Shown in pieces: positions 1,214 through 49,346 of a stretch of DNA of 64,000 nt. How positions within the stretch are numbered: position 1 is the first letter of the stretch; each line of letters begins with the position of its first letter. A program made the position numbers and the translations under genes. The notes beneath the pieces were generated by a model. The model saw only the letters and a program-made list of their open reading frames with translations. It was not told the origin of the DNA and did no database searches. Origin of the DNA: Macrostomum lignano (lineage: Eukaryota); NCBI GenBank assembly GCA_002269645.1, contig NIVC01001270.1, positions 1 through 64,000 on the forward strand, read 5' to 3'.

Positions 1214-4200
1214 GCCGGTGCTCTTTTCGAGAAGATGCGCCGGGCTGCGAAGGACAGCATCAACCGGCTGGTCTGGATGGACAACGAGACGAAGCGTCGA
1301 GCCAAGCAGCGACTGGCCGACATGGTGGAGAAAACCGGCTACCCAGATGAGGCCTGGGATGACAGTTATTTGGACGCGGAGTTCCGCCAGGTGAGTAGCT
1401 TACTGCTCAATACATATTTAATATATATCGTCTCACAACCAGCACTTCGACAATTCTTCCCGTTCCACTGACTCCTGAAAACCTACAAGCGCGCCAATAG
1501 GGTACACACGCTCACGCAGGGTGTACGGCGGTCCTGACTGGCTTTCTAATCGTCAGCGTACATGTACAATTTCTGTGCCTTGGGGGCTGGGCCCTCATGG
1601 GCGTGAATGGCACGGCAACCCTTGTCAATTTATCGCGTCATCATACCAGGGGTCGTGGCGCGAGACCAGTCAGACGCATTTTCCACTGTGCTGCCCTGTT
1701 AAGAGTGTTGTTCCAAGCAGCAGCATCAGCAACTCCATGCAGATTTCCTGTACGTTTCAGATTGATCCGAGTACGCACAGCTACTTCAGCCTGATTGTGA
1801 GCTGCATCAACTACTGGAAGACTCGCCAGGCCCGGCTGCTCACCCAGACCTACAATCCGCTGGATTTCCAGCACTGGGGCCAGCTGTGGGAGCCTGGACT
1901 TCGTTATCTGGCCTACGACCGCGAGCTGCTGGCTCAGGCGGGCGCTCTGCAGGTGCCGCTGTTCCCGTCGGCCGGCCTGCCGCAGCTGCTGGCCTACAGC
2001 GGGGCTGCCAGCATGATGGCGCATGAAATCTTGCAGTCCTTTGACATTACAAGTGAGTGCTGCGTAGGGATGACAGCGAATCTGTCAGAGAGATGACGGT
2101 GGCTTGGTCAGAGAGATGACTTTGACTTTGACTTTGTCAGATAGATAACAATGACTTGGTTAAAGAGATGACAATGAATTGGTTAGATTGATGACTTTGA
2201 CTTTGACTTGGTCAGAGAGATGACAGTGACTTGGTCAGAGAGATGACGGTGACTTGGTCAGAGAGATGACGCTGACTTGGACAGAGAGATGACGGTGACT
2301 TGGTCAGAGAGATGACGGTGACTTGGTCAGAGAGGTGACGGTGACTTGGTCAGAGAGATGACGCGGTGACTTGGTCAGAGAGATGACGGTGACTTGGTCA
2401 GAGAGATGACGGTGACTTGGTCAGAGAGATGACGGTGACTTGGTCAGAGAAGTGACGGTGACTTGGTCAGAGAGATGACGGTGACTTGGTCAGAGAGATG
2501 ACGGTGACTTGGTCAGAGAGATGACGGTGACTTGGTCAGAGAGGTGACGGTGACTTGGTCAGAGAGGTGACGGTGACTTGAGGTGACGGTGACTTGGTCA
2601 GAGAGGTGACGGTGACTTGGTCAGAGAGGTGACGGTGACTTGGTCAGAGAAGTGACGGTGACTTGGTCAGAGAGATGACGGTGACTTGGTCAGAGAGATG
2701 ACAGTGACTTGGTCAGAGAGATGACAGTGACTTGGTCAGAGAGATGACGCGGTGACTTGGTCAGAGAGATGACAGTGACTTGGTCAGAGAGATGACGGTG
2801 ACTTGGTCAGAGAGATGACGGTGACTTGGTCAGAGAGATGACGGTGACTTGGTCAGAGAAGTGACGGTGACTTGGTCAGAGAGGTGACGGTGACTTGGTC
2901 AGAGAGGTGACGGTGACTTGGTCAGAGAAGTGACGGTGACTTGGTCAGAGAGATGACGGTGACTTGGTCAGAGAGATGACGCGGTGACTTGGTCAGAGAG
3001 ATGACAGTGACTTGGTCAGAGAGATGACGCGGTGACTTGGTCAGAGAGATGACAGTGACTTGGTCAGAGAGATGACAGTGACTTGGTCAGAGAGATGACT
3101 TTGACTTGGTCAGAGAGATGACAGTGACTTGGTCAGAGAGATGACTTTGACTTGGTCAGAGAGATGACAGTGACTTGGTCAGAGAGGTGACGTTGACTTG
3201 ATCAGAGAGATGACAGTGACTTGGTCAGAGAGATGACTTTGACTTGGTCAGAGAGATGACAGTGACTTGGTCAGAGAGGTGACGTTGACTTGATCAGAGA
3301 GATGACAGTGACTTGGTCAGAGAGATGACAGTGACTTGGTCAGAAAGGTAACGGTGACTTGGTCAGAGAGGTGACGGTGACTTGGTCAGAGAAGTGACGG
3401 TGACTTGGTCAGAGAAGTGACGGTGACTTGGTCAGAGAGATGATTTTGACTTGGTCAGAGAGATGACGGTGACTAGGTCAGAGAGATGACAGTGACTTGG
3501 TCAGAGAGATGACAGTGACTTGATCAGAGAGATGACAGTGAATTTGTCGGAGAGAAGACAGCTCCGTCGTGAAAACAAGCGTATGAGTCCAGACTGGAAT
3601 TATTTGGCTCAAATTTTTGATAACTTTTTTTTCCTGCAGGTCACGCATACGAAGCGCAGAGGACCAGCGGTTGGTGGTCAGACGCCACAATTTCCGAATA
3701 TCGCAAGCGAACGGCATGCATCATGGACTTGTTTAAGGCAAGACAATTTATAATGGTTTTAAACAAAGACTTGCCAACTTTACAGCCTTCAGCTGCTCTC
3801 TCCATCCCTTATCAGAGCGAGCGCAATCAGCATCAGAGGCTGCTACTGAGCAACTGGACAGCCAGGGAGATGGCCGCGGTCAGCTCAGCTCGAGCTCAGT
3901 TTGACGCCCACCGGCTGCAAGGCGGACGGCCGGACAAGCGGCTGCCGCTGCTGCACCTCACCGAGGACCAGATGTTCTACGTGTTCTATATGCAGGTAAC
4001 TCTAAGCAGTACTCTTATGACGAGTCGACACAAATCTAATTGATACTGTTTAGGAGTTACTCTGCTGTTGAACTTTGAATAAAATTCAGTTAAAGCAGGT
4101 CAACAATCCCCTGATCCCCGAGCACGCACGCGCGCACGGGTACGTACGCAGGCGCGCACTCACACACTCGATCACACAGGGTGTACAGCGGCCCTTGACT

Positions 4201-7509: not shown

Positions 7510-10500
7510 TTAGCCCTTGTACAGTTTGTCCAGACTTTCGATTGCTTGGGTTTTGGTAACGCCGTAGTCAGGAATATCACAGACTTTCCAGTTGTAGTAA
7601 TTCTCAAGTTCCTCCTTGAAAGTGACGAGTAACCATTTCCAATAGTCGCAGTTATCCATTGCTGGATCCGGCAGGACATTCCAATCAAGGAATATTTTAT
7701 GAAAATCCGAGTAGTTGTGGTATTTTCTGTCTTTATCTTGTTTCGCATAAGGTTCGCATCTTCCAGTTTTCTTACATGTGGAGTAACACCAAATCCTCTG
7801 TTTTCGGCGACATAATAGCCGCATGTTCCTAATGACACGCCGGTCTGTTTGCCATCGGTTGTTTCTACAATACTTCCACGCACACCATGAATCCTGTGTT
7901 GCATGCAGCAATGCTTATTACATGAACCACATCCGGTCATATTTGTGCATGGCTCATTGCAGAGCGGGCACTGCTCAGGACAGCCCCACAGCTTTTCACA
8001 GGCGCACAAATGGGGACTCATCTGACCCCAGTCAAACTCTTCTAGTGGGACGTCCAGCTGCGTTTCAATTTGCTCAGTTAAGTCATTGATCTTCGTCTTT
8101 AACACCCGGATAAAACCCGACAGCTTTGCGACAGAAAGTTGGCTGATTTGCTCAAAGTCGTCGGGTGTTATCCCGAGAGTTCTCTGTCCTTCACAGAATA
8201 CATGCACCAACGTACCCAGGCTGCAGCCAGTCACCGCGTTCTGTGCATTCGTTGAATCAACACTGTCTGCAGCGTCGCGGATATCTTTCTCAACGTTTCC
8301 GATCAAGACACCAGCATAGTCTTTAATGAGATTCCGCAGTCGTGTGCGCTTCGTTTCATCATCCTTTTTAAGCAAATAATACTTCATCTTGGCTTCCAGC
8401 CAACTTCCGCAAACTGTTTGCTGTTGTGTAGGTAGGCTTGAAATTCTCGAAATGGTTCTCTGTCTGCTAAGTCCCTTAAAATCGCTTTAATGAGCCCAAG
8501 CTTCATGCCTGAAAACTGGGATTCTATGTCGAGTGTAACACGGTTTGCTACCAACTGACGCACCTGCACGATCGCAGCTTGTTTTATGCTGCTGGCAATA
8601 AAGTTGGCAGCCATAACTTCTTCACTCTCTTTTTTGTACAGACTCTTAAAGACAGTAAAAGCGGTCTCTTTGAAAGACTCGAGCTGAGCTTTCAGTCCAT
8701 GCCGTGCATCGAACTCACCCTGCCTTTTTCTGAGAATCTTCTCAGCAGAGCGGCCTGCGTGTACAGAAAGCTTTATGGCGAGGTTTGGCTTTAGCGACAC
8801 TTTTGGTTTTTTACCTTCGGTGTCACTGGAGTTGAACATGGAGACGTGATCGCGGATACTGCTGACGATTTGAGTCAGCGCTAATCTCAAATTACTTTCG
8901 GCTCCAAGGTCTTTGACTGATCAAGCACTTCATCAGCTTCCTTCAGAATTTCATTGCATTCAGAGTGTACATAGCCCTCTGCAGTCTCAAAGCCAAATGA
9001 CTTTTTAATCTCTTTCCAAACCTTATTCCAACCAGTAACATGTGAAAAGTCATTTTTTTCAACACGCATAAGCGGAAATGAGCCTGAAATTCGCTGCCCA
9101 GCAAATGGCACAGCATGTCTAGCGTCCCATTCCTTGTTAAGCAGTGCCCTTTGATCAAAAAATTCGCTGTCAAGAACGGATTTCAAGATATTCTCTCCAT
9201 CCCATACATCAGTTTTTTCCAGCCGCACTTCACTCATAAATCTGTTCCACATCTCCTTGAACTCTACCTCCAGCTGTTGGTCGCTCATCTCCTTTCCTTG
9301 CTTTTCATTGGCCAGTATTTTTGCTCTCTTCAGAATTTCTTCTCGATAGTTTCCCATATCATTCTGATTGAGCAGCTTCACGCGTTGTATCTCCTTGGAC
9401 CGCATGAGACTGCTATGGGTTTCGCTTATTGCTCTGTCCGCAGCATCTCTAAGGGCATTTTCCCTTTCCTGCTGCCACTTCTTACAGATCTCCTTCTTCC
9501 GATGGCTACAGATGAACTCGGTCATTTCCTTTGACACCGTTTGAGCAACTCCAAAGATATGAGTCCTCATTTTATTTTCTGCATCTCTAAAATTATTCTC
9601 GAGTTTTTCACTTGAGCTGCTTCCAGAAATCAGTGTGATGTTGCTACACAACCAATCTGATGCAGCTTTCTCAATCATCATCTTCAACTCCGCAAACTTT
9701 TGCTCCACATCTCGGTACGCCTGGAGCTCAATTGTATTCTGAAAGCTGAATACGAAGTCTTCCTTCAGCACCGCGTTCCACAGATCTTTTATGCGCTGCG
9801 AGAGTTCGCTAAAGGAGAGGGTGCTGTCAGAGAGACATTGTAAAACTTCAACAACCCTCCTTTTCACTTTAATTACATCCTTGCAATAGTCAGGGCTAAC
9901 GGGGGCCATTGGCGGCTTGCCCTCCCACAGATGAGGCAGGAAAAATATATTACTATCTGCAAACTCGATCACATCTGTGAACTGGGTTACCTCAAGCTGC
10001 TGTTCCTCTTTTGCTACATCCCTAGTGCTTTGATCCAGTTGTGTCAACAGCTTTTCCTTGGCAACTTGAGTCTCTTCAGCTGCATTGACAGCAGCCACAT
10101 TTTGATGAACGAAAATGCAGGATTTCTTCTTGATAATGTCTCCAAATGCAGCTTTCATTCTAAGGAAAGCATGTACGACCACCTGTAAAATGTCCCTTGT
10201 GTCATTGAGTCCTTCTCCGTACATGTTCATGATGGTGACATCTGCCAATCCAATAATCATGGTTGCCAACTCATTATCGTGAGTCATTGAGCCTTCTGCG
10301 ATCTCTGACGACCTCAAACCTTCAGAGTCGATGACGGCAATGTAATCTGCTTTCAGCTGGGACTTCTGCTTGTCATTCGGCACCAGCTGAAGAAAAGCTC
10401 CTTTCGTACAGCGGCCCGCGCTCACTGCAAGCTGCAACCCAAAAAGAGAATTCAGCAGAGTTGATTTTCCTGAGCTCTGCAGTCCCACCACTGCCAATAC

Positions 10501-13500
10501 CAGTAGTGATTTTGTGCCAACCTTTTTCTCTACGGCTTCGAGCACAGCTGACACCCAGTCGACAGGACATGCAGACGCATTCCCATCCATCACTTCGAGA
10601 GGTTCACCTTTCAACAGGAGATCTGCTGCGAAACTCGTCAACATGCTTTTGTAGTCGCTTTCTGCTGACGCAACTTGCGAGCGGCAACAGTGATGAATAG
10701 CTTCGTACGTCTGCCCGATCTCCCGAAACACCTGCTCTAATCCAAATGCGGAATCTTCCATCTTTTTTTCCAATTTTACAAGCTCATCATTGCTGGACTT
10801 TAAATTCGAACTCATATTCTGAGCCTCTCTATTCCGTACAAGAGCTTGCTGATAATTAGATGTGAGCCGCGGCAGCTTCCTACGGCACAGACTGTCAAGA
10901 CTGAGCTTCATCCTCTGCATGAAGATCTCTCTGCACGAATCATCAGTTGCTTTACTTGCATACATCATGAATTGAAAAAGAAAGCTGTTGGCTTCCCCAT
11001 GCTCCTTTAAAAAAAGAAATTGGCGCTTTCTCTCCTTCCGAATTTCGTCTCTCTCAGCTTCAACCCATTTGGCCCTCTTATTTGAATCCATTCGTTTGTT
11101 GTCTCTGTACAGGTTTTTGTTCCTTTTTGCTATCGTCTGCCACATGCTGCCACTGAGAGGCAAATTCTTGTTCCTGCTGACAGCCAGATCCTCCTTCTCA
11201 TCGATAAACTGCATTACAGTCTGAGCAGCCTTCACCGCTTGCTGTACTACTGGTTGCTTTTCGTCAACTTGCCATCTCAGAAAGTCACCCATGGATGAGA
11301 TTTCATCAAGTGATAGTTTCATTTTAAGATCGAGTTTCGAAAGGACTTTCTTCATCTCACATGCAATGCTCTTGGGCGACATTTGATCCTTCTTGCTCCA
11401 GCAGGTGATGCCATGAAAGAGGCCTCCCATCGCATCTAATTCCTTCTTGGCCTTCTTCATGCACTGTGGCACTTTCTCCGAAGTGCGTACCAAAACGATA
11501 CTTCTCTTTCGTTCCATGATTCGGTACAGTGCAGTCAGAACCGAATCTGTTTCTGTGTCACTCTCAGGAAGCATTACAACAACACATGCAGACAGACGTG
11601 ACAGCAACTTGAGCTGCTCTTGATGCAGCAGACCGTCTCCTCGTAGATTCAGAACGCAGGTGACTTGCTGCAGACCCAGAGACTCGTTCTGCGGATCAGG
11701 AACTGCCCATGCCAGCTCTATCGATCCATCACTAATTGTTCTGCTGGGTGAGTTAGAGTTGAACTCAGGAAAAAGCTCATGCTTGTCACTAATGCACTTG
11801 TTGATGAGACTGGACTTTGAGAATTGAGAGTTTCCAAGTCTCACAAAGGAAATGATGGGAAATTTGTCCACGTCAGACGAAATCCGTAAAACTTTGCCCC
11901 TTGCTGCGGATCAGGGTGCACAAAACAGCAGCTGCGTAGTGACCAAACTCGGAGTTTGAGGGAACCGGCGCAGGCCGATGCGATAGGAAAGGCATGCTTG
12001 CAGTCATTCAGCTTCTCAGCCAGGAGTTGCTGCAGCCGCATGTTGCAGCTCAGAAGACAAGCCAGTAATACATCTGAGTAGTGCAGTTTTTTTGCCTCTT
12101 CTTCTTTTTCTTCTTCTTCTTTTGCTTCGTGTGCCATGTCCTCCTCATCGTCTTCGTCATCCCAGAAGCTTTGAGAAACCGCCTTCTTACCTTCCGATGG
12201 GCTTATGTTACAAGCTTCAACGATTTCAAAGCCGGACTTGTAGTCCGCCTGAATGATTGACTTTAAAATCTTCTGAGGTAGCCGTGTGGCATCAGAGGCA
12301 GCAGAATACATCTCATCACCCACTTTCATGACATCAATAAGGCCGATTTTTGAAGGAAAATATTCTGCCAACCCAAGCCGCTGTATAAGAGCCATCTCAT
12401 CCTTGTCTAATTGTTGTTTATAGCTATTTGTCACAACCACTTCAGAAGTATTTGATCGAGCGTCTCGCAGTTCACTGACCATATTTTCTGGAAGCTGCAA
12501 TGGCTGTCCATTATCGCTGAAATTACTCAACAGATGCGTCACCACTTCATTCAGTTCCTTCCAGGCCCTGCTGCTGTTGTCTGCAATATCTGTCAGTTTT
12601 TCATTTAGAGGTGCAGCCCACTGTATGCCGCTTTGTTGAAATAGCAAGATCCAGTCAGCCACATGAAAGCAACAGCCATCGTCAAATCTTGCGTCCATCG
12701 CTGTGTGCAACAGTCGTGCCTGCACAAACTCTGGCTCGGAGCTTTCCTTTATAACAGAAAGTTGTTGCGCGCTTTCTTTCAAACTCTGCGCCAGATGCTG
12801 AAGACTTTCTGGATTTTTAAGGTTCTCAAAAATGTCGTTTTGTAGCGAATAGGAGTTGCGAGCAAGAGCGGTGCAGGTTAAAAAGTGCTTTTCTGCATCA
12901 CCAGACTCCTTCAGTCGCCTTAGTAGATGCTGCACCGCTGTATTCAGATCGACGAAAACCAGCTGCAGCACTTTGCGCTGCTTCTCACTGTCTCCTTCGT
13001 GCTGCACATTAAAAGCCTGAAGATCTGGCAGCACAGTTTGCTCCACTGCCTCTGCCAGCTTCAGCGGGCAGTCAAGTCCCATGTCGGTGAGCTTGCTGTA
13101 ATTTTCATCCTGTTCACAAGCCAGCTGGAAATAGAGCCGGCCTTTCATAGGAAAGCTGCAGCTGCCACTCATTTGGAGTAAGTAAGAAATGTGCGATTTG
13201 ATTGGCTTAATTGCATCTCTTATTGTAGGCAAAGCTTGAACGACAGCTAGCATGATAGTATGAAAATGAGGGTTCCGTGTCCAGCTTACGCCCCTTTTCT
13301 CTTCATCTGTTAGCTGCTCAACTGCTTCTACTCTCTCGCACAATGTCTGCAGCTGCAGATGCCAATTCTCTTCTGATAAATTTTCCTTTTCCACTCGCTG
13401 TGCGAATTCATCAATGCGCTGCTGTACGCAGCTGACTGCCTGTCTGTAAGAATCACTGCTCTCAGCAGGCGCCTTTTGTCCTGTGCGCTCCTCCCAGGAT

Positions 13501-14816
13501 TTTTTCAAAGCGTTGGCCAGAGCGTCAGCATCCTGGAAGTGCTGCCCGTTTGCCTTGACAATCTGCCACACAGGCACTGTGTCACTGCTGCCGTCAATCA
13601 CTGCCCAAGTGCTGCTGTCTTGCACAAGACCTTCGCACCACTTGGACACCGAGCTCGCACCTGGAGCTCCTCCGAACATTTGACTTTTGAGCTGTACATT
13701 CGAACTCTGTTTCTCTCTCTTGTCCGCAGTATTATCTTCCGATGAGCTCGCAACACCTGCATCTGAAGGTTCACCCTTGATAAATAAATTTCCACCTTTA
13801 ACAGCAGTAGCTAAAGCTTTGCTCACGCTATTCTTAATCATTTCCAGATTAGAACTGGATTGGTACAGCGCATGAGCAGTTGTGATGTGCACTCCACCAA
13901 AGTGAATCATTCCAGCAATTGCATGACTGCCGTACTGATCGAAGAAGTTCGTTGCCTCCTCAGTGACATCTGACTTGCATGTCATCATGGCTTCGATGTT
14001 CTGCAGCTCCTCAATAGCCCTGCCAGAAAGATGCAGATTGCTGCACTCCAGCAGACACGCAGCAGTTGGCACCGTGTGCACTGTGCACTTTGCATACACA
14101 GACTCAGAGTTCTGCTGCATTGATTGTTTGCGTTCGCCTGACCGGAAGTCTGCTTTAGCAGAAGCAGCGAGTTCAATAGTCGAAAGCATCCCAGTCACGC
14201 TGAATGAACCCTGAATACTTAAAGAAAACACGTCAGCCGAGAATTTGTTAAGACTCTCACTGCTAAAAAACTCAAAAGTCGATTCGCCAGCTGGCAACGC
14301 GCAAGATGGCTGCACTAATTTCACGCCGGTTGCGGGTTCGAGCAGCCGAGTCGAGCTGCATTGCTTCCAGACTCCTCCTTCAAGCTTCATCCCTTTTTGG
14401 AGATGTTCACCCGATGCGTTTGAAACCACAGCATTCGCATCCACCGTGCACACTGGCTGCGGTGACCCCTCTTTCGTAGTCCAGAGGCTTGCAATACCTT
14501 TCTTAATATCCTCTTCAGATAATGCTTGTGTTTTGCACATCTGAGTGAGCTCACTCGGTACTTCTGGCGCCTCGGCTGGAATTTCTGGTAGTTTCAAATC
14601 CTGTTGTTCGAATTTCTTGTTCTTTCTCCGCTTTTCAATTTCTTTCATTTTTTCTTCTACCTCTAGTCTTTTATTTTGTAGTTCTAATTTCTGTAGCTCC
14701 TCTTTCTGTTCTTCCAATGTCTTCGCCTCGAGCTTCTCATCATTCACATTTTGGCTTCTGCTGCCTTCGGGTGGTTCACTCGGTTTAGAACCCTCTGATC
14801 CACTAAGAGACTCCAT
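7510..14816 (-). CDS. GVIN1: Very large inducible GTPase (VLIG/GVIN1/URGCP family) with N-terminal MACPF-like domain; four -1 frameshifts (probable assembly errors; pseudogene not excluded)
   Basis: ORFs 14816-11841, 11871-8887, 8890-8384, 8387-7500 and 7911-7510 are consecutive overlapping segments. Family motifs: ISFVRLG...SKS, DG.IELAW, NLRGD, P-loop GLQSSGKST (10485-10459), GRCTKGAF, IDSEGLRS, HDNELAT, GCPEQCPLC..PC, YWKW. The ATG is preceded by an in-frame TAG and a 3' splice site (AG at 14853-14852). Adding four bases gives 2436 aa, the size expected for the family. Confidence 0.88.
13542..14384 (-). other. MACPF-like domain within the VLIG N-terminus (aa ~145-425)
   Basis: Signature-like FFDQYGSHAIAGMIHFGG (YGSH-x-GG at 13934-13893), a preceding alternating amphipathic segment, and a downstream FGG...W...L...W.VID...VPVW. 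Confidence 0.7.
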
Positions 14817-16230: not shown

Positions 16231-17035
16231 TTGTTAATACAATTTGAGACAGTGAAAGGTCAAATCGCTGAGTATGCACCAAATGTGCCCATTGATGATA
16301 AAAATCTGACAGCCAATCAAGTTCAGTGTGTCAAAGATCTGCTGTATCAGTGCCGGGATGTGTTCTCGAAAGGTCCAAACGACCTGGGCTGCACTTCACT
16401 CCTTGACCACAAAATTGACACCGGGTCGGCGAAACCCATTAGAGTGCCTCCTCGTCGATTGTCACCGCTGAACCAGCGAGCTGTGTCAGAGATGGTCGAG
16501 CAGATGGTGCGAGACGACATCGTAGAGCCTTCGAATTCTCCGTGGTCGAGTCCAGTCATTATGGTGAAGAAGGACAGCAGTTTGCGCTTTGTGAACGACT
16601 TCAGACTGCTCAACTTCTGAAGTCATCCACTGCTTCACACCAGCGATCTGATCGATGCTCTCGCAGGATCCACAACGCTCGACTTCACTAGCGGATACAC
16701 CCAGGTGATGCTGGACTCAGAGAGTCACGCAAAAACAGCATTTCATGCGCCACAGGGATTATTCCAGTACAAGAGACTACCGCAAGGTGTGTGCAATGGT
16801 CCTGCCACGTTTTAAAGACTGATGAAACTCGTTCTGAAGGGCCTACGTTGGGAAGTGTGCCTGTCATTTCTTGACGACGTTGTCATCTTTTTAAAAGGAG
16901 TCGAGGAGCATCTGTGGCGTCTTGAGCTTGTTTTGCAGAAATTCAGAACCGCTAACCTGAAGTTGAAGCAACCAAGTGCTACTTGTGCTATCAGGAGATC
17001 TCATTTCTTGGCTTTCGAATCTCAAAAGATGGCGT
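16231..17035 (+). mobile_element. Ty3/Gypsy reverse transcriptase fragment (pseudogenised)
   Basis: HKIDTGSAKPI..PPRRLSP, IVEPSNSPWSSPV.MVKK, DFRLLN, LDFTSGY.QV, KTAF, LPQG..NGPATF, FLDD. Contains stops and frameshifts and is truncated before RNase H. Confidence 0.9.
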
Positions 17036-24747: not shown

Positions 24748-27700
24748 TTAAGACAGCTGCAGCAGCACCGATTTGGCAAAGGCGGCAGCCTGCATGCTGG
24801 CGTACGGCTGCCACACGTTTCCCTTCTGACCGTCGTGATAGTCGGAGCAGGCGCGCACAATTAGAAACGAGTTGCACCGGTTGCCAAGGATACTCTCTAG
24901 CACCTGGTCGAACTCGGTGTCGTAGCCAAGCAGGCCGCGCTCGTCGGCGAATGCGGTGCGCAGGTAGGTGTCCGACACCACCGGCTTGCCGCAGCCGAGC
25001 GGCCCGAGGCGCACCATCGGCCAGTTGCCGGCGCGGTCGATGCTCGGCGGGGCGATCTCGATGATCTGCCCGTCGCCCAGCTGCATTTGCACCTTGTCCT
25101 CGACGCCTTCCGGCCGGGCAAAGTCGGACAGCTGGCTGACCACCTCGGCAAAGAGCTGGTTCCACGGCGCCTGCGGGGTGCGGGTCGGCCGCTGATGCAG
25201 TGGGGTGCCTGGATCTAGGACACGGTAATCTCAACTGGACCCTGGATCCTTGAGATGATTTTAATCTCAACCGATCCCTGGATCCTTGAGATGATTTTGA
25301 TTTCAACCGATCCCTGGATCCTTGGGACGATTCTGATCTCAACCGATCCCTGGATCCTTGGGATGATTCTGATCTCAACCGATCCCTGGATCCTTGAGAT
25401 GATTCTGATCTCAACCGATCCCTGGATCCTTGAGATTACTCAATTCAACTCACCCTTGACAGCCCAATTCGAGGTGGTTCCCAGATGCATCCCGATGAAA
25501 ATGGTACCTAGGCCAAGAAGCATCCCAGAGTCGCTTCTGAGTCGTTCCAGGTAACGGGTAAAATGAAAGCGACAATAAAGTCGTATCTATCAATCTATGA
25601 CGACCTTAAGACGAAAAGATGTCACGGTACAAGTCGCCCAAAAGTCGTTAACGAGTCAATTTGAGGCGTTTTATTGTCTGTGACTCTAAAACGACTCTGG
25701 GGTGTTTCTATAACGACTCTGGGACCGTAGAGTCGTATCTGAGGCGTGCTAGAGGCGTTTTTAACGGACATGACAATCCCAACTCCAAGTGGTTCTCAGA
25801 CGCAAGACGCAAAGCGCACTTACATTCTCAAAGCTGGGCCCGTACTCATTAACCAGACTGGCAGCTTTGCGCATGAGGCTGGGATCCGGGATGGTCCAGT
25901 TCTTCAGGCTGAAGCTGAACTGCCCGGAGTCGTCCTCGTCGACATTGTCGCAGTAGATGTAGGCGCTGTCCTGCTCGCGGCTGGGCGATGCGATAATGAT
26001 GTCGCCAAGGCGGCTGCTCTTGGCCAGGTCGCCCAGGTTGCACACCGAGCCGCAGACGCCAACTAGCAGCACGTGCTCAATGTCCTGCACAGGTGATCAA
26101 TCAATCAGATGCTCAATCAAAGGCGGGGTGTCCGAGACTAGGAGACACTAAGAGGTGCCAAGAGGAGACACTGTCGGGGTGTCCACCAATTTGGGACAGA
26201 GACACTGTCGGGGTGTCCACCGATTTGGGACAGAGACACTGTCGGGGTGTCCACCAATTTGGGACAGAGACACTGTTGGGTGTCCACCAATTTGGGACAG
26301 AGACACTGTCGGAGTGTCCACCAATTTGGGCGGGGTGTCCATCAATCTGGGATAGAGATACTGTGGGTGTCCATCAATTTGGGACAGAGACACTGTGGGG
26401 TGTCCACCGATCTTGTGTAGACACATTGTCAGCTTGCCCAAAACGATGCGAAATTTAGCTAATAAAGAATGTAAAAATCGCAGTTTCTAAGAACTTGCCT
26501 GAAACGTGCCCAACAATCGAGTCGTCGTATTGCCGCTAGCAATCTTGGCCCGCCTGTCACGCCCAACCGCCGGCAGTTTAGTGCTGACGCACTTGTGCGG
26601 ACCAATAAACCCGATAGTGTAGACGTGCGAATCGCCGCCTTTAGTCTCGTAGCGAACGTAGGTGGTCTTATCCTGCATCATAGCGTCCACCGCTCGTTTC
26701 TCGCACATCAGATTAGTGATAATGGCCACGGTCGGCTTGTCCTTCATCTTAGTGATGACGTCCATGTTGCCCTCGGCCATGACTTCCACTTTGCCCATGC
26801 CCAGATCGGCGTTCTCCTCGTCCTGGGCAACCCGGAGTACGTAGGCAAACTTGCCCTTGTGCTTACCCTCCATGGCCATGCGGTGGATGCTCTCCTCCGA
26901 CAGCATCTGGTCAAGGATGCGCACGATCAGCTTCTCGTCCTGGCGAATCACCCTGAGCGCAATTGTTTTGAGAGTTGTGATGCAGCGAGGGAATAGCCAA
27001 TATGGTATTTGTAGAGGTATATAAAATATACAGTAAATTCCAATTCTTTGCATACAGAGGACCTATATGTCATTACCTGTCAACTTTACTTACTATGCAT
27101 TTGTCATCTATACTTACTTACAGGACATGTTTGATAGCACAATATTCAAATTATGTAATTGGTCTATAATTATCCAAAAATGCATCTGACACAATTGCTG
27201 TTAAAATAGGGGATGCTAGATTAGAGATGCTTACTTGGACAGCTCCTCAGTAGTGAGCACATTGGGATAGGCTTCCTCAATGGTGCGCATCAGCTGTTCC
27301 TGCACTCGAACCTCCAGTGGCCTGTCGTCTCGCTCTGGACAGGTAATTTAAATGGGAAAATGTAATAACTTTGCTGTTGGTTACTAGTGTAAAGCAAACG
27401 GAACAATCATGTGAAAGTTTTCAGCTAAGATATTTCACTATGTGGATATAACACAGCTAATCTCTGACACTGCTCTGAATCATTTGAAGTTACTCTGTAT
27501 CATATCTGACACGAATTATTATCCCATCTGTCAAGTATTTAATTATATCCGAGACTGTTCTGGATAACATCTGAACTTGCTGTGTATCAACACCTGACAC
27601 TACTCTGTATCACACCTGACACTGTTCTGTATCACACCTGACACTGTTCTGTATCACACCTGACACTGTTCTGTATCATATCTGACACTGTTCTGTATCA

Positions 27701-30700
27701 CAGCTGACACTGTTCTGAATCACACCTGACACTGTTCTGAATCACATCTGACACTGTTCTGAATCACATCTGACACTTCTGTATCACTTCTGACACTATT
27801 CTGTATCACTTCTGACACTATTCTGTATCACTTCTGACACTATTCTGTATCACTTGACACTGTTCTGAATCACATCTGACACTTCTGTATCACTTCTGAC
27901 ACTATTCTGTATCACTTGACACTGTTCTAAATCACATCTGACACTGTTCTGAATCACATCTAACTACTTTGTAACTTCTATATGACTGCTCATTATCATT
28001 ATGTCTGACACTGCCCATTTTTCTAGTCTGACACCGTATAATATAAAAAAAAGTCAAAAAACACCTGCGTACTAAAAATTATTAACAAAACACAAATATT
28101 ACTAAAAACAAAATACATGGATACGATGGATCATGATATACATAAAATAACAAAGACATCAACTACAACCCTAATTGATAAGGAATTTTACTCACAGCAA
28201 CTACAAGAAGTGCAAATGCAAATCTACAAAACAGCTCAAAGCCTATAAAGCTGGGAAACTATAATAAAAGACAGGTGCAGCCTTCGCAAAGCGCAACAAC
28301 TTCAAATAAGCGACAACGAAAGTAGGAGTAAAATACCTGACAATAGCTATTTCTATCTGACACTGCTCAATATCCCATCTGAGACTGCTCAATATCGCAT
28401 CTGACACTGCTCAATATCACACCTGACACTGTCCAACATCAAATCTGACACTGCTCAATATCGTATCTGACACTGCTCAATATCCCATCTGACACTGCCC
28501 AACATCAAATCTGACACTGCTTTTTTTTCTCAGAAACCTGAGAAAAAGCATCAACACGGGAAAAAGGAACAAAATAATCCAATGCAAAGAAGAAAGCCAT
28601 CCGCAACATGCCTACGAGTAGAAACTAAAAGGACAAATAAAAACAAAAAATACCAGACAAGGTAACTAACTTTGCAAAAAAAGTTTTCTTACCAAAGTTT
28701 GGCATGTCTAAAAATAGATTGAAGGAATGATTTTATAGACATTATTGGAAGGATTTTTATAGACAAGATGCCAATTTTATTGGGTTAATAGCATGACTAT
28801 ACCAATATTACAAGTACAGCTTAGTTCTAAACAACTCTGACAGCTTTTCATTTTATCTTTATAATTTTATCTTATATCTGTTTAGATTTTTAGTTTTATT
28901 AGGAGACTTGAACAGAAAGTAATATACCAAAATCTGCCGATTTTGTTTGGCTAATCGACAAGTACAAGACTTGCTACTCAACGAGTAGACAGTAGTGAAA
29001 AATAACGATAAAAATTAGCAAATCGATAGAACTTACCCTCCATGCCTTCGAACACTGCCTCGTTCTTGTCCAACGGGATCACGTCCAGATGGATGCGAGA
29101 AATGTTATTGTACTTATCCAGCAGCATCAGCCGCATCACTCGTTTAATAAATGTGGCATAATCCTTGGGCACGTGACCCGGCGTGATGAGATCGTTGAAG
29201 AACATGAATGACGTCTGCACTAGAAAGCTGGTCACCTTCTTCTGCGCGGACGGGACGAACCAGAAGTGCAGCTTTCGGTTCTCCTGCAGGTAGATGAAGA
29301 CAAAACACGGGTTAAATTTTTGTAATTTTATTTTAACTTGTAGGAAGGTGCTGTTGGCACTTTATCTGATTTTATCACAACTTACTGCTCGAACATCATT
29401 AGAGTCCTGGTTGACTACAAAGCATTTGTAGGTGATCTCGGACTCCGAATCAGCCAACGGTGTGTAGGCGCCCTCTGCGGATTATTTAAAATAGGGAGAT
29501 TTTTTGAGGGAAATCCGTTCGGTTGCTGGGTAACTTGCGGCGCAAGTGTACCCAAGTTAAAGCTACGAGAATATACTACTGAGACTACAGACACTATCAA
29601 GGGGTAGCCAGCTTCAAACAGGCTGTTAAAACTTTCCGTCACCCTTGCCAGGCAAAGCACCCCCATGGCGAGCTAATTGTAGCTTACTTACAGGTGAGAA
29701 ATAGTCGATTTTTCCTGCCAAACCTGATGCAATTCTAGGCAAAATCACGACTTTAAAAGTATTTATTCTTTGGGCAAGAAGTGCAAAGCCCTGTTTAATG
29801 CGCAGCGCTAATGCTAAAAGCGCAGTAAAAATTTCCTACTTTTTCTTGACGAGAAAATCCGAACTTATTATACTGCGTGGATGCCAGAGAAACAAAAATC
29901 ATAAACGGGATTTGTCACCCGGGGTCGAAATGTCGCCCAAGGCTTCTAAAGTTCAGTAAATATCGATAGAAACAGTTTCTATGCGGAATAAGTATAATTA
30001 ATCCAGTAAGCAATAAAATCCTGTCAGGTGCAATCCGATTACAACTAATACAGGAAATCGAAGCCATCAAATAGAGTTTACAGAGGCACAGCCCAACAGA
30101 GAGAAATATCCCCAGACTTGCTTCTGTTGTGATCGCTCTGGAATAAACTGGATAGATAGGCAAGGTAGTGATTCATATTTTCGCCTTAGCCACTTCCCCG
30201 TCTGTACCACGAATCGATAGGGAGGGATGCATCCATATCTTAGAAGGCACGCGCACAACCCGGCTAAGATAGATGTGTAAACAAAACACACAGAGATAGA
30301 GGCCTTCTACACAATGTAGTGAATGACGAATTCAGAATTTGCCTGCAAATGGACCAAGTGGATAGCGGATCTGAATGAGGTTCGTTTTTAGACAAAAAAT
30401 CACATAAACACTGAGTCACCCTCTGCTGTTCCGTGACTCTCAGCAGACTGTCGCTGACCCCCCTGTGATTCTGCAGCAGACTGCCACTGAACCTCTGTGA
30501 TTCTGCAGCAGGACTGCCGCTGACCCCCCTGTGATTCTGCAGCGGGACTGCCGCTGACCCCTCTGTGATTCTGCAGCGGGACTGCCGCTGACCCCTCTGT
30601 GATTCTGCAGCAGACTGCCGCTGACCCCTCTGTGATTCTGCAGCGGGACTGCCGCTGACCCCTCTGTGATTCTGCAGCGGGACTGCCGCTGACCCCTCTG

Positions 30701-31677
30701 TGATTCTGCAGCGGGACTGCCGCTGACCCCTCTGTGATTCTGCAGCGGGACTGCCGCTGACCCCTCTGTGATTCTGCAGCGGGACTGCCGCTGACCCCTC
30801 TGTGATTCTGCAGCGGGACTGCCGCTGACCCCTCTGTGATTCTGCAGCGGGACTGCCGCTGACCCCTCTGTGATTCTGCAGCGGGACTGCCGCTGACCCC
30901 TCTGTGATTCTGCAGCGGGACTGCCGCTTTGACCCCTCTGTGATTCTGCAGCGGGACTGCCGCTTTGACCCCTCTGTGATTCTGCAGCGGGACTGCCGCT
31001 GACCCCTCTGTGATTCTGCAGCGGGACTGCCGCTGACCCCTCTGTGATTCTGCAGCGGGACTGCCGCTGACCCCTCTGTGATTCTGCAGCGGGACTGCCG
31101 CTGACCCCTCTGTGATTCTGCAGCGGGACTGCCGCTGACCCCCCTGTGATTCTGCAGCAGACTGCAGTTTTGACCCCTCTGTGATTCTGCAGCGGGACTG
31201 CCGCTGACCCCTCTGTGATTCTGCAGCGGGACTGCCGCTGACCCCTCTGTGATTCTGCAGCGGGACTGCCGCTGACCCCTCTGTGATTCTGCAGCGGGAC
31301 TGCCGCTGACCCCCCTGTGATTCTGCAGCAGACTGCAGTTTTGACCCCTCTGTGATTCTGCAGCAGACTGCAGTTTTGACCCCTCTGTGATTCTGCAGCA
31401 GACTGCAGTTTTGACCCCTCTGTGATTCTGCAGCAGACTTGCCGTTTTGACCCCTCTGTGATTCTGCAGCAAACTGCCGTTTTGACCCCTCTAATTCTGA
31501 AGAAGACTTACTGTCATCAATAATCGCTTTATAGATTACAATGCCCTGGTTGACGCCAGTAGCCACATGGACAATCTGGTTTTGGTCGAGATTGTCGCTG
31601 GAGGTGCGCACACACTCCATAGTAGTCATTTGGCCTCGCCTGATTGGCGTCATCACAATCACCCAACTGGACTCCAT
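24748..31677 (-). CDS. Uncharacterised winged-helix plus nucleoside phosphorylase (PNP_UDP_1/MTAN-like) domain protein, about 567 aa
   Basis: Exons 31677-31512 (3' splice site before 31687), 29723-29692 (32-nt micro-exon), 29283-29037, 27334-27235, 26952-26499, 26084-25824 and 25191-24748 join in frame (1704 nt); intron 26498-26085 is GC-AG. PNP motifs: TNLMCEKRAV, LLVGVCG, RLGDIII, YDTE, IVRACSDYHDGQKGNVWQPYASMQAAAFAK. Additional upstream coding exons cannot be excluded. Confidence 0.85.
25230..25440. repeat. Intronic minisatellite, 36-bp unit x~6
   Basis: atctcaaccgatccctggatccttgagatgatt(t/c)tg. Confidence 0.9.
25490..25790 (+). mobile_element. Dispersed intronic repeat, MITE-like; inverted homologue at about 61900-62202
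   Basis: cccgatgaaaatggtacctaggccaagaagcatcccagagtcgc...agatgtcacgg.acaagt...ggcgtttta.tgtctg.gactct matches the reverse complement of D2HGDH intron 1. Confidence 0.7.
26150..26420. repeat. Intronic minisatellite, 33-34-bp unit x~7
   Basis: gtccaccaatttgggacagagacactgtcggggt. Confidence 0.9.
27570..28520. repeat. Two related 22-bp minisatellite blocks (27570-27965 and 28355-28520)
   Basis: Units tctgacactgttctgtatcaca and tctgacactgctcaatatccca share TCTGACACTG. Confidence 0.85.
30420..31490. repeat. Intronic minisatellite, 33-bp unit x~32
   Basis: cccctctgtgattctgcagcgggactgccgctga; produces the spurious ORFs 30264-31472 and 30400-31677. Confidence 0.95.
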
Positions 31678-36235: not shown

Positions 36236-37150
36236 TTCCGTAAACCTTTGAAAATTTGACATAATAGAAAAAATCACTGATTAAATTGAATAGCAGAGCA
36301 GAAAACGTTGCTTTTCACAGTCATATGTGCTTTAGTTTGCACTGCAATTCACAGTGTATTTGTTTTTTCTTCTTTAAAAAGCACGGCGACAACAATACTG
36401 TGTTGGGTTGCGAAAGCGCACAGTATCTGATTGTTACGTTATGTTGTAAATAAATGAAACTTGGAAAAGCGCATTGTTTCTGTACTTTGCACTTTCATGC
36501 AATAAATGGGCCAAAAAAGCCTCACAGCACAGTTAATCCAATCCAGTAATAAAACTACTAAATTAGAGCAGGTAAGAGCCATAAAAGAAGGATTCTGTAA
36601 TGTCGCAACTTAAACATTTCTGCTCTTGATTCAATCCAATAGCAATAATGGTTGAGCAGATAGACAACAATTAAAAACAATATAAAGTTTCGCAAACAAA
36701 GTTTGTAAACAATACGATTTCTGGTGCTGACAGTATAATTAATATTAATAGTATACAATAACAATGGTAAAAAATACAAAATTCACGAAACTTGTGTTGT
36801 GAACACTACTAGTAATTAATGACAAATAATGTTACAGCTGCATATATAAATTCATAAGTTATTATGAAGAGAATTCACAGGAAGCTAATTAGATTGTTGA
36901 TGTACGAGCTACATCATTCAACTCAAATGGTGAATTAGAAAAATGCACTATGCGAATTCCCTTGTTACTTGTGATTGTGAATTGCGGGCGGCTTGTAAAT
37001 TCTTAATACTCGTGAAGCAATGACTATAATCAATCTTGGGTCTCACAAAGTAAAAAAATGGTAAAAACTGACAGAATCGGTGTGTGGTGTGCATTGCAAA
37101 TGAACTTCATGTGAATGTCTGTTCAATATCAGATTCCTTTATCATTTGCT

Positions 37151-37422
37151 CAGATACTGCTGAGGCTGGCCAGCTCCCGCTTCACCCGGTCCTATTCAGA
37201 TACTGCTGAGGCTGGCCAGCTCCCGCTTCACCCGGTCCTATTCAGATACTGCTGAGGCTGGCCAGCTCCCGCTGCACCCGGTCCTATTCAGATACTGCTG
37301 AGGCTGGCCAGCTCCCGCTTCACCCGGTCCTATTCAGATACTGCTGAGGCTGGCCAGCTCCCGCTTCACCCGGTCCTATTCAGATACTGCTGAGGCTGGC
37401 CAGCTCCCGCTTCACCCGGTCC
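37151..37422 (-). repeat. 46-bp tandem repeat x6 made of the last 13 codons, stop codon and 4 nt of the SH3 gene
   Basis: Units start at 37151, 37197, 37243, 37289, 37335 and 37381. On the minus strand each reads GAC CGG GTG AAG CGG GAG CTG GCC AGC CTC AGC AGT ATC TGA ATAG. Confidence 0.95.
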
Positions 37423-39396
37423 ATGTCCACGCAGCAGGCGTGAAAGCTCTTCTTAATATTGTCGATCTCCTCTTTCAGGCCCGCGATGTTGTCAACAGCC
37501 GTGCGCTTGAACCTGCTCAGCTCCAGGATCTCCCGGTCGCGCTGGGCCGCCTCCGAGCGAAGGCGCTGCACCTCCTGAAGCAGTTCAGCGAGCGTCTCCG
37601 GCTGCTGCTGACCGGACCCGCCAGCCGCGCTGTAAGACGTGGCGGCCGTGGTCAGCTGGGAGCTCTCGGTGCGGCTGGCCTCCTCTTCCAGATGCTGCGG
37701 GGCGTTCAATGGATTGCTGCTCAGTTGCTATGCGGGCCTTAGCAACCAGCGGTCACCTGGATTTGGCTTTACCGTGTTTTACACTGTGGGATTCCCATAC
37801 CCTACACTGTGGGATTCCCATACCCTACAACTGTGGGATTCCCATACTACACTGTGGGATTCCCATACCCTATACTGTGGGATTCCCATACTACACTGTG
37901 GGATTCCCATACCCTACACTGTGGGATTCCCATACCCTATACTGTGGGATTCCCATACTACACTGTGGGATTCCCATACCCTACACTGTGGGATTCCCAT
38001 ACCCTACACTGTAGGATTCCAATACCCTACACTTTGGGATTCCCATCCCCAGTAGGACACTCACTGGGCCCCTGTGATTGGCTCCGTTTGGCGGCCTCTT
38101 GCCGGCCACCGGCCGCGGCCTGCCAGCTGCCGCGTCGGCCAGCGGCTGCCGCTGCGGGTGGTCGCCAGCCAGCAGGCCGTTGCTGCCGGCGTGTGCAGCG
38201 GCGGAGTCCAGCCCGCCGGACGAGTTCTGGTGCCGGGCGGCGGCGCTGACAGGCGGCCGGGCCGGCGCGGCGGCGGCAGTCGAGGAGGCGGCCTGTCGGG
38301 CAGGCGCGGCAGCCGAGGCGGAGCAGGGCTCAACAAAGTTGTCGGGGAACACGCCGACCTGGCCGTGCAGCTCGCCCTGCCACCAGCCGTCGTCGCTGAG
38401 GTTGCGGTTGGTGACGCGGATCACGTCGCCGATGTGGAGGGTCAGCTCGTCCTGGTGCTGGGCCGTGTAGGCGTGGATCACCTGCGTTGCCATGGAAATA
38501 GGGATTGTGAATGGGGATATTTTTATGGATTCGGGACCCGGGCTTCTGTAATTGGGATCTGGGTGTATGTAATTGGGATCTCGGTGTCTGTAATTGGGAT
38601 CTCGGTGTCTGTAATTGGGATCTGGGTGTCTGTAATTGGGATCTGGGTGTCTGAAATTGGGATCTGGGTGTCTGTAATTGGAATCTGGGTGTCTGTAATT
38701 GGGATCTTGGTGTCTGTAATTGGAATCTGGGTGTCTGTAACTGGGATTTGGGTGTCTGTAACTGGGATCTGGGTGTCTGTAATTGGGATCTGGGTGTCTG
38801 TAATTGGGATCTGTGCCCCAATACCCGAGCCACTCCAACCCAGCCTCCCTAACCTTCACATAGTCCGAGTGCATCTGCAGCTTGGCCTTATCAGACAGCG
38901 AGGCCGATGCTGAACCGCCAGCAGTCGCCGACTGCGCAGGCTTCGGCTGGTGCTGCCTGACTGCGCTGGTGGGCGCCATCCCGGGCAGGGGGCGCGACGG
39001 CAGCTGCTGCTGCTCGTGCGGCGGCTGGCCACCCCCGCCGTCAATGTCCAGATAGGCCAGCGGGACGGGAAACTTGGCGGCCAGCTTGGGCACGTAGACG
39101 GTCGCCACAGCGGCGGATCCGGCAGCTGGCAGCGGCTCCATCGCATAGACAGCAGAGTTGGCCTCCAAGCCGGAGGCGCGCAGCTTCGGGTCAACCCGGC
39201 GCAGGGTGGCCAGGCGGCACGGTTTAACAAAATTGTCAGGGAACAGGCCGCGCCTGCCCGCCGAGTTCCGGCCGCGAAGCCAGCCGTCCTCCTCCGGCTC
39301 GGCGTCGTACAGCAGCTCGCCTTTGACTATGGAGAGCTCGTCCTCCTGGTCGGCTTTGTAATCGAACTCCACTAAATAGCAGCACTTGTCCGACAT
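37380..39396 (-). CDS. CD2AP/CIN85 (SH3KBP1)-like adaptor: two SH3 domains, Pro/Ala-rich linkers, C-terminal coiled coil (424 aa)
   Basis: Exons 39396-38854, 38481-38065 and 37694-37380, all phase 0, GT-AG. SH3 motifs FDYKADQEDELSI.KGE...GWLRG...GLFPDNFV and HAYTAQHQDELTL.IGD...GWWQGE...GVFPDNFV. Confidence 0.85.
37780..38050. repeat. Intronic minisatellite, 21-24-bp unit x~12
   Basis: ctgtgggattcccata(ccc)taca; contains the hairpin-type palindrome TGGGA-T-TCCCA. Confidence 0.9.
38545..38815. repeat. Intronic minisatellite, 21-bp unit x~13
   Basis: gtaattgggatctgggtgtct; reads as HPDPNYR repeats on the minus strand. Confidence 0.9.
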
Positions 39397-41869: not shown

Positions 41870-42168
41870 TCTGGTCTCTCCCTGACTCTCCCTACGTCCC
41901 TTGGATCCTTCTATCGTCTCTTTGTTTCCTCTCATCTCTCTTGTCCCTCGTCTCTCCTCTCTCCTCTCGTATCTTCCCTTATCTCTCTTCTCTTTCGTCT
42001 CTTGTCTCTTCGTTTCTCTCTCCTCTCCTTTCTCCTCTCTCCCCCTCTCCTCTCTCATCTCTCCCCTCTTCTCTCGTCTCTTCCCTCACCTCTTTTCTCT
42101 CTCGTCTTTGCTCTCTCATCATTCATTTCTCTTTTTTTATCTTTTATCTCTTCTCATTTCTCTCTGCT

Positions 42169-42251
<83 letters not shown>

Positions 42252-42925
42252 GTCTTTCTCTCTTATCTCTCCTTCTCTCTCTCCCCTCTCCTCTTTCCGC
42301 TCCTCTCTCCTCACTCACTTCTCTACCTTTGTCTCTCCTCTCTCCTCTCGTCTCTGTAACCTCTCCTCTGTTCTCTCTACTCTCCCATCTTTTATCTGTT
42401 CACTCTCGTCTCTGCTCTCTCATCCTCCCTCTTTAATCTGGCATCTCTGTCTTATATGTTCTCTCACCTCTCTCCTCTGTACTCTTTTCTTTCCCCTCTT
42501 TTGACTCCTCACTTTCCTTTCTCCTTTCTTCTTTTCTCTTCTCTTCCCTTTTCTATACTCTGTCTCCCTCTCTTCTCTCACTCCACTCTCCTCTCTCTGT
42601 TATCTCTTATCTCTCCTTCCACCTCTCATCTCTAGAACCTTAGAGATGTAGAGATGTATCTTTATCTCTTCTCTCTTCCCTTTACTCTCTCATCTCTTCT
42701 TTCACCTGTTTCCTCTCTGCTCTCCTCTCTGCTGTCTCCTCTCTCCTCTCATCTGCAGCTCTCTGCTCTCTCATCTCTACTCTCTCCTCTCGCTTTTCCT
42801 CTCTCCCCTCTTCTCCCCTCTCTCTCATCGTCCTCACCCCCTCATCTCTCCTATTATCTTTTATCTTTTCTTTTATCCCCTCTGTCGCCTCTCCTCTCTT
42901 CGAATCGTCTATTCCTTCTTCTTTC
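41870..42925. repeat. CT-rich low-complexity tract with a pure (CT)n core at about 42175-42244
   Basis: About 1 kb polypyrimidine strand; source of spurious Leu/Ser ORFs. Confidence 0.95.
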
Positions 42926-48670: not shown

Positions 48671-49346
48671 GAGAGACATTTTCAAACGTAATAAGAAGCG
48701 TCATGCCAATCATAAAGGAGCCCCTAGAAAGCTAAAAGGAAATGTTGCACTATATACTTTTTGTCAGTTGGATGCTTGCTATTTAAGGATAGATACTTGC
48801 TATCAATTGGATGCTTGCTATCTGGGGGTGCTTGCTATCTGGGGGTGCTTGCTATCTGGGGGTGCTTGCTATCTAGGGGTGCTTGCTATCTGGGGGTGCT
48901 TGCTATCTGGGGGGGGGGGAGGGGGGATGCTTGCTGTCTTGGGATGTTTTCTTTTTGCATTTCGCTTCATTTGAGCAGTTTTTCTGTTGTCTTTGTGAAG
49001 ACTCTATTTGGCGGGGTTTTTTTACTTGTAGAGAACAGAAGTTCTATCCAGATGTCCCCCATCGGGGGGGCGAAGATTGCTAGTAATTTTCTAAAAAGAA
49101 AAAAAATTCCAAGGAATTAAGCTTTTTAGTAGAATTTTCATTTCAAAATATATACCGAATTAACAAAAATTTGTAAAGAAGTCAAAAAAATCAATACAGA
49201 ATACTTACATTTATTTATAGTATTTGCAATACGTATGTATATTCTTTAAAGTTTGTAAAATAACTATACAAAACGAAAAGCGCGTCGTCTGCTGAGAAAA
49301 AGGTCCGGTCACAACATAATCACATAATTATGGTCTACTAGTAGTA

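Follow-up and report, generated by a model that had tools for sequence, protein, structure and literature searches.

A MACPF-fold domain at the N-terminus of a GVIN/VLIG-type giant GTPase gene in the flatworm Macrostomum lignano

The stretch of DNA analyzed here (the window) comprises 64,000 nucleotides of the flatworm Macrostomum lignano (contig NIVC01001270.1, positions 1 to 64,000). Its minus strand carries, at 14816-7510, a GVIN/VLIG-type giant GTPase gene of ~2,400 residues, and there is very little doubt that the N-terminal domain of the encoded protein has a genuine MACPF fold by homology. Of the four families of interferon-inducible GTPases, GVIN/VLIG is the one that is understood least. 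The best overall explanation, which on balance we favor, is that the gene specifies a MACPF-bearing GVIN/VLIG GTPase in which GTP-driven assembly would order the MACPF domains for membrane insertion or perturbation. An original prediction, made from the nucleotide sequence alone, had proposed a MACPF-like domain for the segment 13542-14384, which corresponds to amino acids (aa) 145-425 and lies inside a 991-codon open reading frame (ORF1, 14816-11841, minus strand). The motifs that it quoted (YGSHAIAGMIHFGG, SLSIQGSFSVTGMLSTIELAASAKADF, a Ser/Gly-rich segment, and W..W..ID..PVW) were each found on the minus strand where it had placed them, and the invertebrate source that it had supposed proved to be a flatworm.

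The assignment of the fold rests on sequence profiles and on a structural model. The Pfam MACPF model PF01823 matched aa 219-396 (14162-13629) with 29.4 bits (E = 1.1e-6), above its gathering cut-off of 21.5 bits. A single-sequence phmmer search of the PDB was merely suggestive, giving pleurotolysin B (PlyB) at E = 0.015; a profile of 33 family sequences aligned with PlyB at 8.7e-6 across nearly the entire domain and also matched C8alpha (4.8e-4), Plu-MACPF (0.02), and TgPLP1 (0.12). An AlphaFold2 (AF2) model of aa 100-480, computed on the family alignment, had a mean predicted local distance difference test score (pLDDT) of 79.1 and a predicted template-modeling score (pTM) of 0.73. It contains long bent strands (model residues 140-157 and 203-219) together with two inter-strand regions of ~55 aa, which are part helix and part low confidence. 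When the model was compared with the PDB by Foldseek, 62 matches were obtained at E<=1e-3, and the top 50 were all MACPF structures; named matches were PlyB (2e-12), perforin (1.1e-7), GNIP1Aa, C8alpha, C6, C9, MPEG1, Mpf2Ba1, TgPLP1, and astrotactin-2 (ASTN2). The original prediction had named, as findings that would speak against a MACPF-like N-terminus, the lack of a significant MACPF match or a model without a bent four-stranded sheet and two helical clusters; the match was significant, and the model has long bent strands and the two flanking ~55-aa regions.

Conserved motifs point in the same direction. The signature YGSHAIAGMIHFGG fits the MACPF consensus Y/W-G-T/S-H-F/Y-x6-G-G, except that its fifth position is Ala instead of Phe or Tyr. 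Gly296, His298, Gly302, Gly307, and Gly308 are invariant or almost so in the family alignments, and the GG hinge is invariant. The same holds for Trp393, Leu397, Trp404, Ile407, and Trp417 within the C-terminal MACPF motif, which was aligned with EEWVAST..HWRVIEV of PlyB.

Two regions of the domain are putative equivalents of the transmembrane hairpins (TMH1 and TMH2) of MACPF proteins. The first holds the alternating segment (SLSIQGSFSVTG/MLSTIELAASAKADF), which as SLSIQGSFSVTGMLSTIELAASAKADF spans aa 198-224 (14225-14145); the stretch of PlyB aligned with the whole TMH1-equivalent region is one that we take to be PlyB TMH1. The second Ser/Gly-rich segment spans aa 319-372. Family median lengths are 55 aa for TMH1 and 56 aa for TMH2, with a very tight spread, and the family-mean hydropathy alternates with a period of two at the midpoints of both regions, with peaks at 198-211 and 213-223 in TMH1 and at 335-356 in TMH2. 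In the window protein itself, the TMH1 alternation falls in the 99th percentile within the protein. Membrane insertion is consistent with the fixed TMH lengths, the alternating hydropathy, the invariant GG hinge, and the pore-forming relatives, and pore formation by the window protein is a plausible prediction.

Table 1. Features of the giant GTPase gene in the window, listed from the N-terminus to the C-terminus of the encoded protein.
Feature	Position	Strand	Basis or remark
Whole GVIN/VLIG-type giant GTPase gene	7510..14816	-	five frame pieces; family hidden Markov model (HMM) and tblastn with homologues
Charged, coiled-coil-like N-terminal leader, aa 1-126	14439..14816	-	no signal peptide
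MACPF-fold domain, aa ~127-445 (~320 residues)	13482..14438	-	Pfam, PDB profile, AF2, Foldseek
TMH1-equivalent region (putative), aa 184-238, 55 aa	14103..14267	-	flanked by AF2 strands; low-confidence tip
MACPF signature YGSHAIAGMIHFGG, aa 295-308	13893..13934	-	family alignments
TMH2-equivalent region (putative), aa 319-374, 56 aa	13695..13862	-	AF2: helix, then low-confidence loop, between two strands
C-terminal MACPF motif W..GL....TW.VID....PVW = WCEGLVQDSSTWAVIDGSSDTVPVW, aa 393-417	13566..13640	-	family alignments
Middle region between MACPF and first G-like domain, aa 446-911	12084..13481	-	within family HMM match
Pfam URGCP domain (atypical G domain)	11212..12083	-	PF25496; split by frame break J1
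Frame break J1	11865..11925	-	near GGGG and TTTT runs; homologue and HMM alignments
VLIG-type GTPase domain	9883..11049	-	Pfam URGCP_GTPase, ORF2 aa 275-663, E 9.4e-112
Frame break J2	8875..8914	-	near AAA run
Frame break J3	8366..8426	-	one lost base; homologue and HMM alignments
Cys/His-rich cluster, C-terminal tail (HLCACEKLWGCPEQCPLCNEPC...CCMQHRIHG)	7884..8012	-	motif positions
Frame break J4	7737..7791	-	near AAAA run

The remainder of the gene has the layout of the GVIN/VLIG family (Table 1). An HMM built from 27 full-length GVIN/VLIG proteins of ~2,400 aa each is collinear, from position 65 to position 2418, with window positions 14723-7516, with the order of parts kept including the Cys/His tail: MACPF domain, middle region, atypical G domain, VLIG-type GTPase, and Cys/His-rich tail, which in the family consensus carries a conserved C..CP.C...C....H motif. 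Membership of the window gene in this family is thus assigned with high confidence. An in-frame stop lies two codons 5' of the ATG at 14816. The highest hydropathy of any 10-aa segment in the first 40 aa is -0.53, which bears out the earlier claim that no signal peptide is present, and a hydrophobic N-terminus is also absent in 41 of 42 full-length relatives. The giant GTPase sequence was examined for a signal peptide and a transmembrane helix, neither was found, and the protein is accordingly predicted to be cytosolic. No Pfam domain was matched in the middle region.

The degenerate GTPase-like module, the intact P-loop GTPase, and the Cys/His-rich tail described in the original prediction are all present. 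PF25496 matches ORF1 aa 912-962 and ORF2 aa 3-220 (E = 2.9e-36). This atypical G domain has a variant P-loop, LGNSQFSKSS (11838-11809; GxxxxSKS), and NLRGD in place of DxxG; its AF2 model (pLDDT 82) was assigned a P-loop GTPase fold by Foldseek, with matches that include Arl13B, Rabs, GBP5, atlastin, and GBP1. The VLIG-type GTPase domain retains an intact G1 motif (GLQSSGKST, 10485-10459) and an intact G3 motif (DSEG, 10329-10318), and the Pfam GBP and dynamin models match the G domain weakly.

To examine the distribution of the N-terminal domain, aa 100-480 served as the query of a HMMER scan against 1.84 billion representatives, which returned 337 clusters at E<=1e-3 (169 at E<=1e-10). The signature [YF]G[ST]H..GG was present in ~140 of the 151 homologues retrieved from these 337 clusters, 66 of the 151 also contained the VLIG GTPase, and many measured 2,300-2,600 aa and had the domain at residues ~100-550. 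Named members come from eel, tarpon, sea urchin, oyster, alligator, hamster, and M. lignano itself (a paralogue). The N-domain HMM matches hamster GVIN1, which carries FGSHANQGPLHLGG, at E = 2e-120, in agreement with the suggestion in the original prediction that vertebrate GVIN1 has a similar motif and that the feature might be family-wide and little studied. N-domain identity between the window protein and vertebrate copies is ~26-31%. A query with the GTPase retrieved 66 proteins, mostly GVIN1-like or URGCP-like forms of ~1,600 aa, and the N-domain was unmatched in 65 of them. As judged from these matches, there are two architectures, a long, MACPF-bearing form (~2,400 aa) and a short form (~1,600 aa), that share one database name, and the MACPF domain is a trait of the whole long-form GVIN/VLIG family, mammals included, plus one cyanobacterium. 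Two other searches recovered little: a word-index homologue search with the domain returned nothing but the protein itself, and a search with the 33-sequence profile returned 6 proteins.

Several further observations were made on the reach of the family. The GTPase query also recovered VLIG-type G domains in the fungus Racocetra and the ciliate Paramecium. PF26771.1 appears only in the precomputed Pfam list of hamster GVIN1 and, as a candidate new family, may represent a long-form-specific GVIN1 region. After the N-domain search had retrieved a protein from a metagenome-assembled genome (MAG) of the cyanobacterium Okeania, a scan of bacterial genomes located an intact 2,301-aa ORF of the same architecture on the MAG contig NZ_JAAHHG010000183.1 of Okeania sp. 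SIO3B5 (17.9 kb; L001:4196-11101, +), with the signature YGSHALLGTITFGG, a URGCP domain, and a VLIG GTPase that is likewise intact (GIQSSGKS); the architecture is therefore not limited to animals. Its densely packed neighbors (TPR, CoA-binding, FMN-dependent dehydrogenase, TM2, and M48 peptidase) read as bacterial-type. In Leptolyngbya sp. PCC 7376, the G-domain part has a homologue of 1,246 aa (Lepto7376_3821), encoded on a 5.1-Mb contig that is probably the complete chromosome. No NCBIfam or PADLOC model matched the window protein or the Okeania ORF, and no PADLOC model matched the Leptolyngbya protein. The two cyanobacterial proteins suggest either that GVIN-type GTPases were transferred horizontally or that they arose in prokaryotes.

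The domain had been recorded in the GVIN/VLIG family in a supplementary table in 2022, and in the library searched we found no paper that treats GVIN/VLIG jointly with MACPF or perforin; it is recorded but unexplored. Human GVIN1 has been described as an otherwise unnamed 'N-terminal domain', a flexible linker, and two large-GTPase domains (bioRxiv 10.1101/2025.03.24.645074). The same study reports that cytosolic Burkholderia become coated with human GVIN1, which disturbs the localization of outer-membrane proteins, and that this coatomer is O-antigen-dependent, requires cofactors, and acts in parallel to GBP1 (bioRxiv 10.1101/2025.03.24.645074). The statement in the original prediction that these GTPases are of unknown mechanism is therefore outdated.

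As assembled, the gene is not one open frame, a feature absent from the original prediction. There are four frame breaks (J1 to J4 in Table 1), each equivalent to one lost base, and addition of one base at ~11896, 8895, 8403, and 7766 gives a conceptual translation of 2,436 codons with no internal stop. ORF1 alone would specify a 991-aa protein with the MACPF domain and middle region and without the GTPase, such that the MACPF domain would be uncoupled from the GTPase. Introns were ruled out as the source of the breaks, because homologue alignments run continuously across the junctions with no extra sequence (at J1, 21 homologue residues correspond to 68 nucleotides). A divergent M. lignano paralogue, PAA93654.1 (1,982 aa, single exon; L002:6001-13406, +, on NIVC01000023.1 of the same assembly, GCA_002269645.1), has a tail that continues in another frame after the loss of one base at an A8 run and that contains one in-frame stop. 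Interrupted frames therefore recur, either within the gene family or within the assembly.

As origins of the breaks, we judge assembly errors and a young pseudogene to be about equally likely. That the window locus is a dead or dying pseudogene, with real frameshifts and at most the 991-aa MACPF protein made, is given a chance only a little short of even. The four breaks themselves and the interrupted paralogue fit such a locus, as do the retroelement fragment and many repeats around the gene (see below). The family consists of giant single-exon immune genes in which frame interruptions are common and pseudogene annotation is frequent. Public gene models are truncated, to 626 aa for the locus and 677 aa for a ~95% identical copy; the former, UniRef A0A1I8G4K9, is 100% identical to the window protein over the MACPF domain and had been auto-named 'MACPF domain-containing protein'. 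Human GVIN1 itself has in-frame stops and for a long time was listed as a pseudogene, and yet is reported to be functional (bioRxiv 10.1101/2025.03.24.645074). Against a pseudogene, no stop occurs in 2,436 codons after only four single-base restorations, and every catalytic and signature motif is intact. All five frame breaks at the two M. lignano loci are, moreover, one-base deletions beside homopolymers, a pattern typical of long-read consensus errors.

The mechanism in the explanation that we favor would be as follows. The G domains would dimerize or polymerize in a nucleotide-dependent manner, as GBP1 does and as has been proposed for human GVIN1 coats. Through this assembly, the MACPF domains would be gathered and aligned on a target membrane, for instance that of a pathogen surface or a vacuole, where the two TMH regions of 55 and 56 residues could unfurl into amphipathic beta-hairpins that insert into the membrane or perturb it. 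The nearest matches by both sequence and fold are proven pore formers (PlyB, GNIP1Aa, C8/C9, perforin, and MPEG1). Actual pore formation or membrane perforation by the window protein is nevertheless a more tentative proposition, which we consider possible but somewhat doubtful, and the gating of pore formation by GTP-driven assembly, also suggested in the original prediction, is something we infer.

Comparison with known systems locates the protein between GTPase coats and pore-forming toxins. It shares with the long GVIN/VLIG forms the order of parts over ~2,400 aa, an intronless giant gene, and the lack of a signal peptide, and, like human GVIN1, its gene is interrupted in frame; it differs from the vertebrate members in its flatworm origin and in its four frameshifts in this assembly. 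To our knowledge, no interferon system has been described in flatworms, and interferon induction therefore cannot be assumed for the window gene. The alignment with PlyB, part of a fungal two-component pore former (PDB 4oej, 4v2t, 9do6), runs through both TMH regions as well as the signature and the C-terminal W motif. As in PlyB, the MACPF domain of the window protein has no obvious membrane-binding domain of its own and would depend on a partner module. PlyB is, however, a ~50-kDa toxin component that depends on PlyA/OlyA for membrane binding, whereas in the window protein, predicted to be cytosolic and 2,436 aa long, the MACPF domain is joined to two G domains; identity is ~15%. Perforin-1, perforin-2/MPEG1, and complement C6-C9 resemble it in fold, signature, the two ~55-aa TMH regions, and a presumed immune context; unlike it, they are secreted or luminal proteins with signal peptides, disulfides, and ancillary C2, P2, or TSP/LDLa/EGF domains, and neither a signal peptide nor ancillary domains of the perforin or complement type were found in the window protein by Pfam scan and N-terminal hydropathy. 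The coatomer of GBP1, an interferon-inducible GTPase of the dynamin superfamily, offers a functional analogy only, in that GTP-driven dimerization and polymerization are followed by insertion into the bacterial outer membrane; GBP1 inserts by way of a farnesyl tail, has no MACPF domain, and lies outside the GVIN/VLIG family. Astrotactin-2, the BRINPs, and Torso-like are different again, being extracellular or membrane-anchored developmental proteins.

A number of points weigh against the explanation we favor. Foldseek template-modeling scores (TM-scores) for the MACPF model are modest (0.35-0.45), in line with what floppy TMH loops and extra flanking helices would give, and AF2 confidence is low at the TMH tips. 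The Pfam MACPF model had no match in the fish and urchin copies tested and gave just 22.0 bits with family member P0020, such that the link by sequence is borderline beyond the window copy, which outscores the other tested members; the domain is therefore rarely annotated. TMH2 alternation in the window protein alone reaches the 87th percentile, which is unremarkable. Non-lytic MACPF proteins exist, and ASTN2 is among the Foldseek matches. Lytic or pore-forming activity has been reported for no GVIN/VLIG protein, and what has been described for human GVIN1 is a coat, not lysis (bioRxiv 10.1101/2025.03.24.645074). The four frameshifts in the window copy and the frameshift and in-frame stop of the paralogue count on the same side.

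In an alternative that we regard as possible though unlikely, the MACPF domain is real but non-lytic and would serve as an oligomerization scaffold or as a surface-, lipid-, or glycan-binding module that aids the GTPase coat. The fold is known without pore formation in astrotactin-2, itself among the Foldseek matches, in the BRINPs, and in Torso-like, proteins in which the TMH regions are not known to be conserved amphipathic hairpins. A coatomer that depends on O-antigen and cofactors, with lysis unreported, would suit such a role (bioRxiv 10.1101/2025.03.24.645074), as would the modest amphipathicity of TMH2 in the window protein, and pore formation from within the cytosol would put the host cell at risk. 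On the other hand, the TMH regions keep their lengths of 55 and 56 aa and their alternating hydropathy across phyla, the GG hinge and signature are conserved, and the best-ranked matches, by sequence as well as by structure, are genuine pore formers, with ASTN2 lower. A chance motif match in a non-homologous domain, in keeping with the phmmer E of only 0.015 and with several family members below the Pfam cut-off, is extremely improbable and was ruled out by the PDB profile matches and by the exclusively MACPF top 50 of the Foldseek search.

If membrane insertion or perturbation is indeed coupled to GTP-driven assembly, the perforin-like N-domain would offer a concrete mechanism for a family whose first function, the Burkholderia coat, was reported only in 2025. 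A broader proposal, that GVIN/VLIG proteins are nucleotide-gated cytosolic perforins, an ancient module found in Okeania and from flatworms to mammals in which polymerization triggers hairpin insertion, appears rather improbable to us; if true, they would be the first perforin-family effectors to act from the cytosol under GTP control. Given the flatworm, mollusc, echinoderm, and cyanobacterial members, the architecture is far older than interferon. Conservation of the MACPF domain also raises the question of whether it is kept in the functional human GVIN1 ORF of 1,808 aa. The window locus itself is one further family member, possibly broken, and of limited value on its own.

The surroundings of the gene are rich in repeats. 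Just upstream of it lies a short ORF (16231-16620, +) with a weak retroviral-protease-like Pfam match (E = 0.007), whose sequence (…SPWSSPVIMVKKDSSLRFVNDFRLLN) looks like the beginning of the reverse transcriptase of a retrotransposon; the adjacent segment 15200-16140 has GC-rich ORFs that overlap on the two strands, and both segments together are probably a truncated retroelement. Minisatellites with units of 18-46 bp and up to 72 copies occupy 2084-3559, 27547-27961, 30446-31470, 37150-38050, 38545-38813, 45861-48678, 59752-61306, and 63022-63446 (for example, a 23-mer x64 at 2084-3559 and a 23-mer x72 at 47016-48678). They account for a GC-skew spike at 2-4 kb, and the array at 30446-31470 gives rise to long ORFs at 30264-31677 that are spurious and whose Pfam matches are meaningless. 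A degenerate (CT)n microsatellite of ~220 units (41929-42355) underlies a 223-aa ORF at 41765-42436 and is one source of the strongly negative GC and AT skew in the 42-44 kb bin. Two other ORFs, one with two SH3 domains (37981-39396, -; SH3_9, E = 3.5e-30) and one with a FAD_binding_4 domain (62198-63004, +; E = 7e-35), are probably exons of ordinary host genes.

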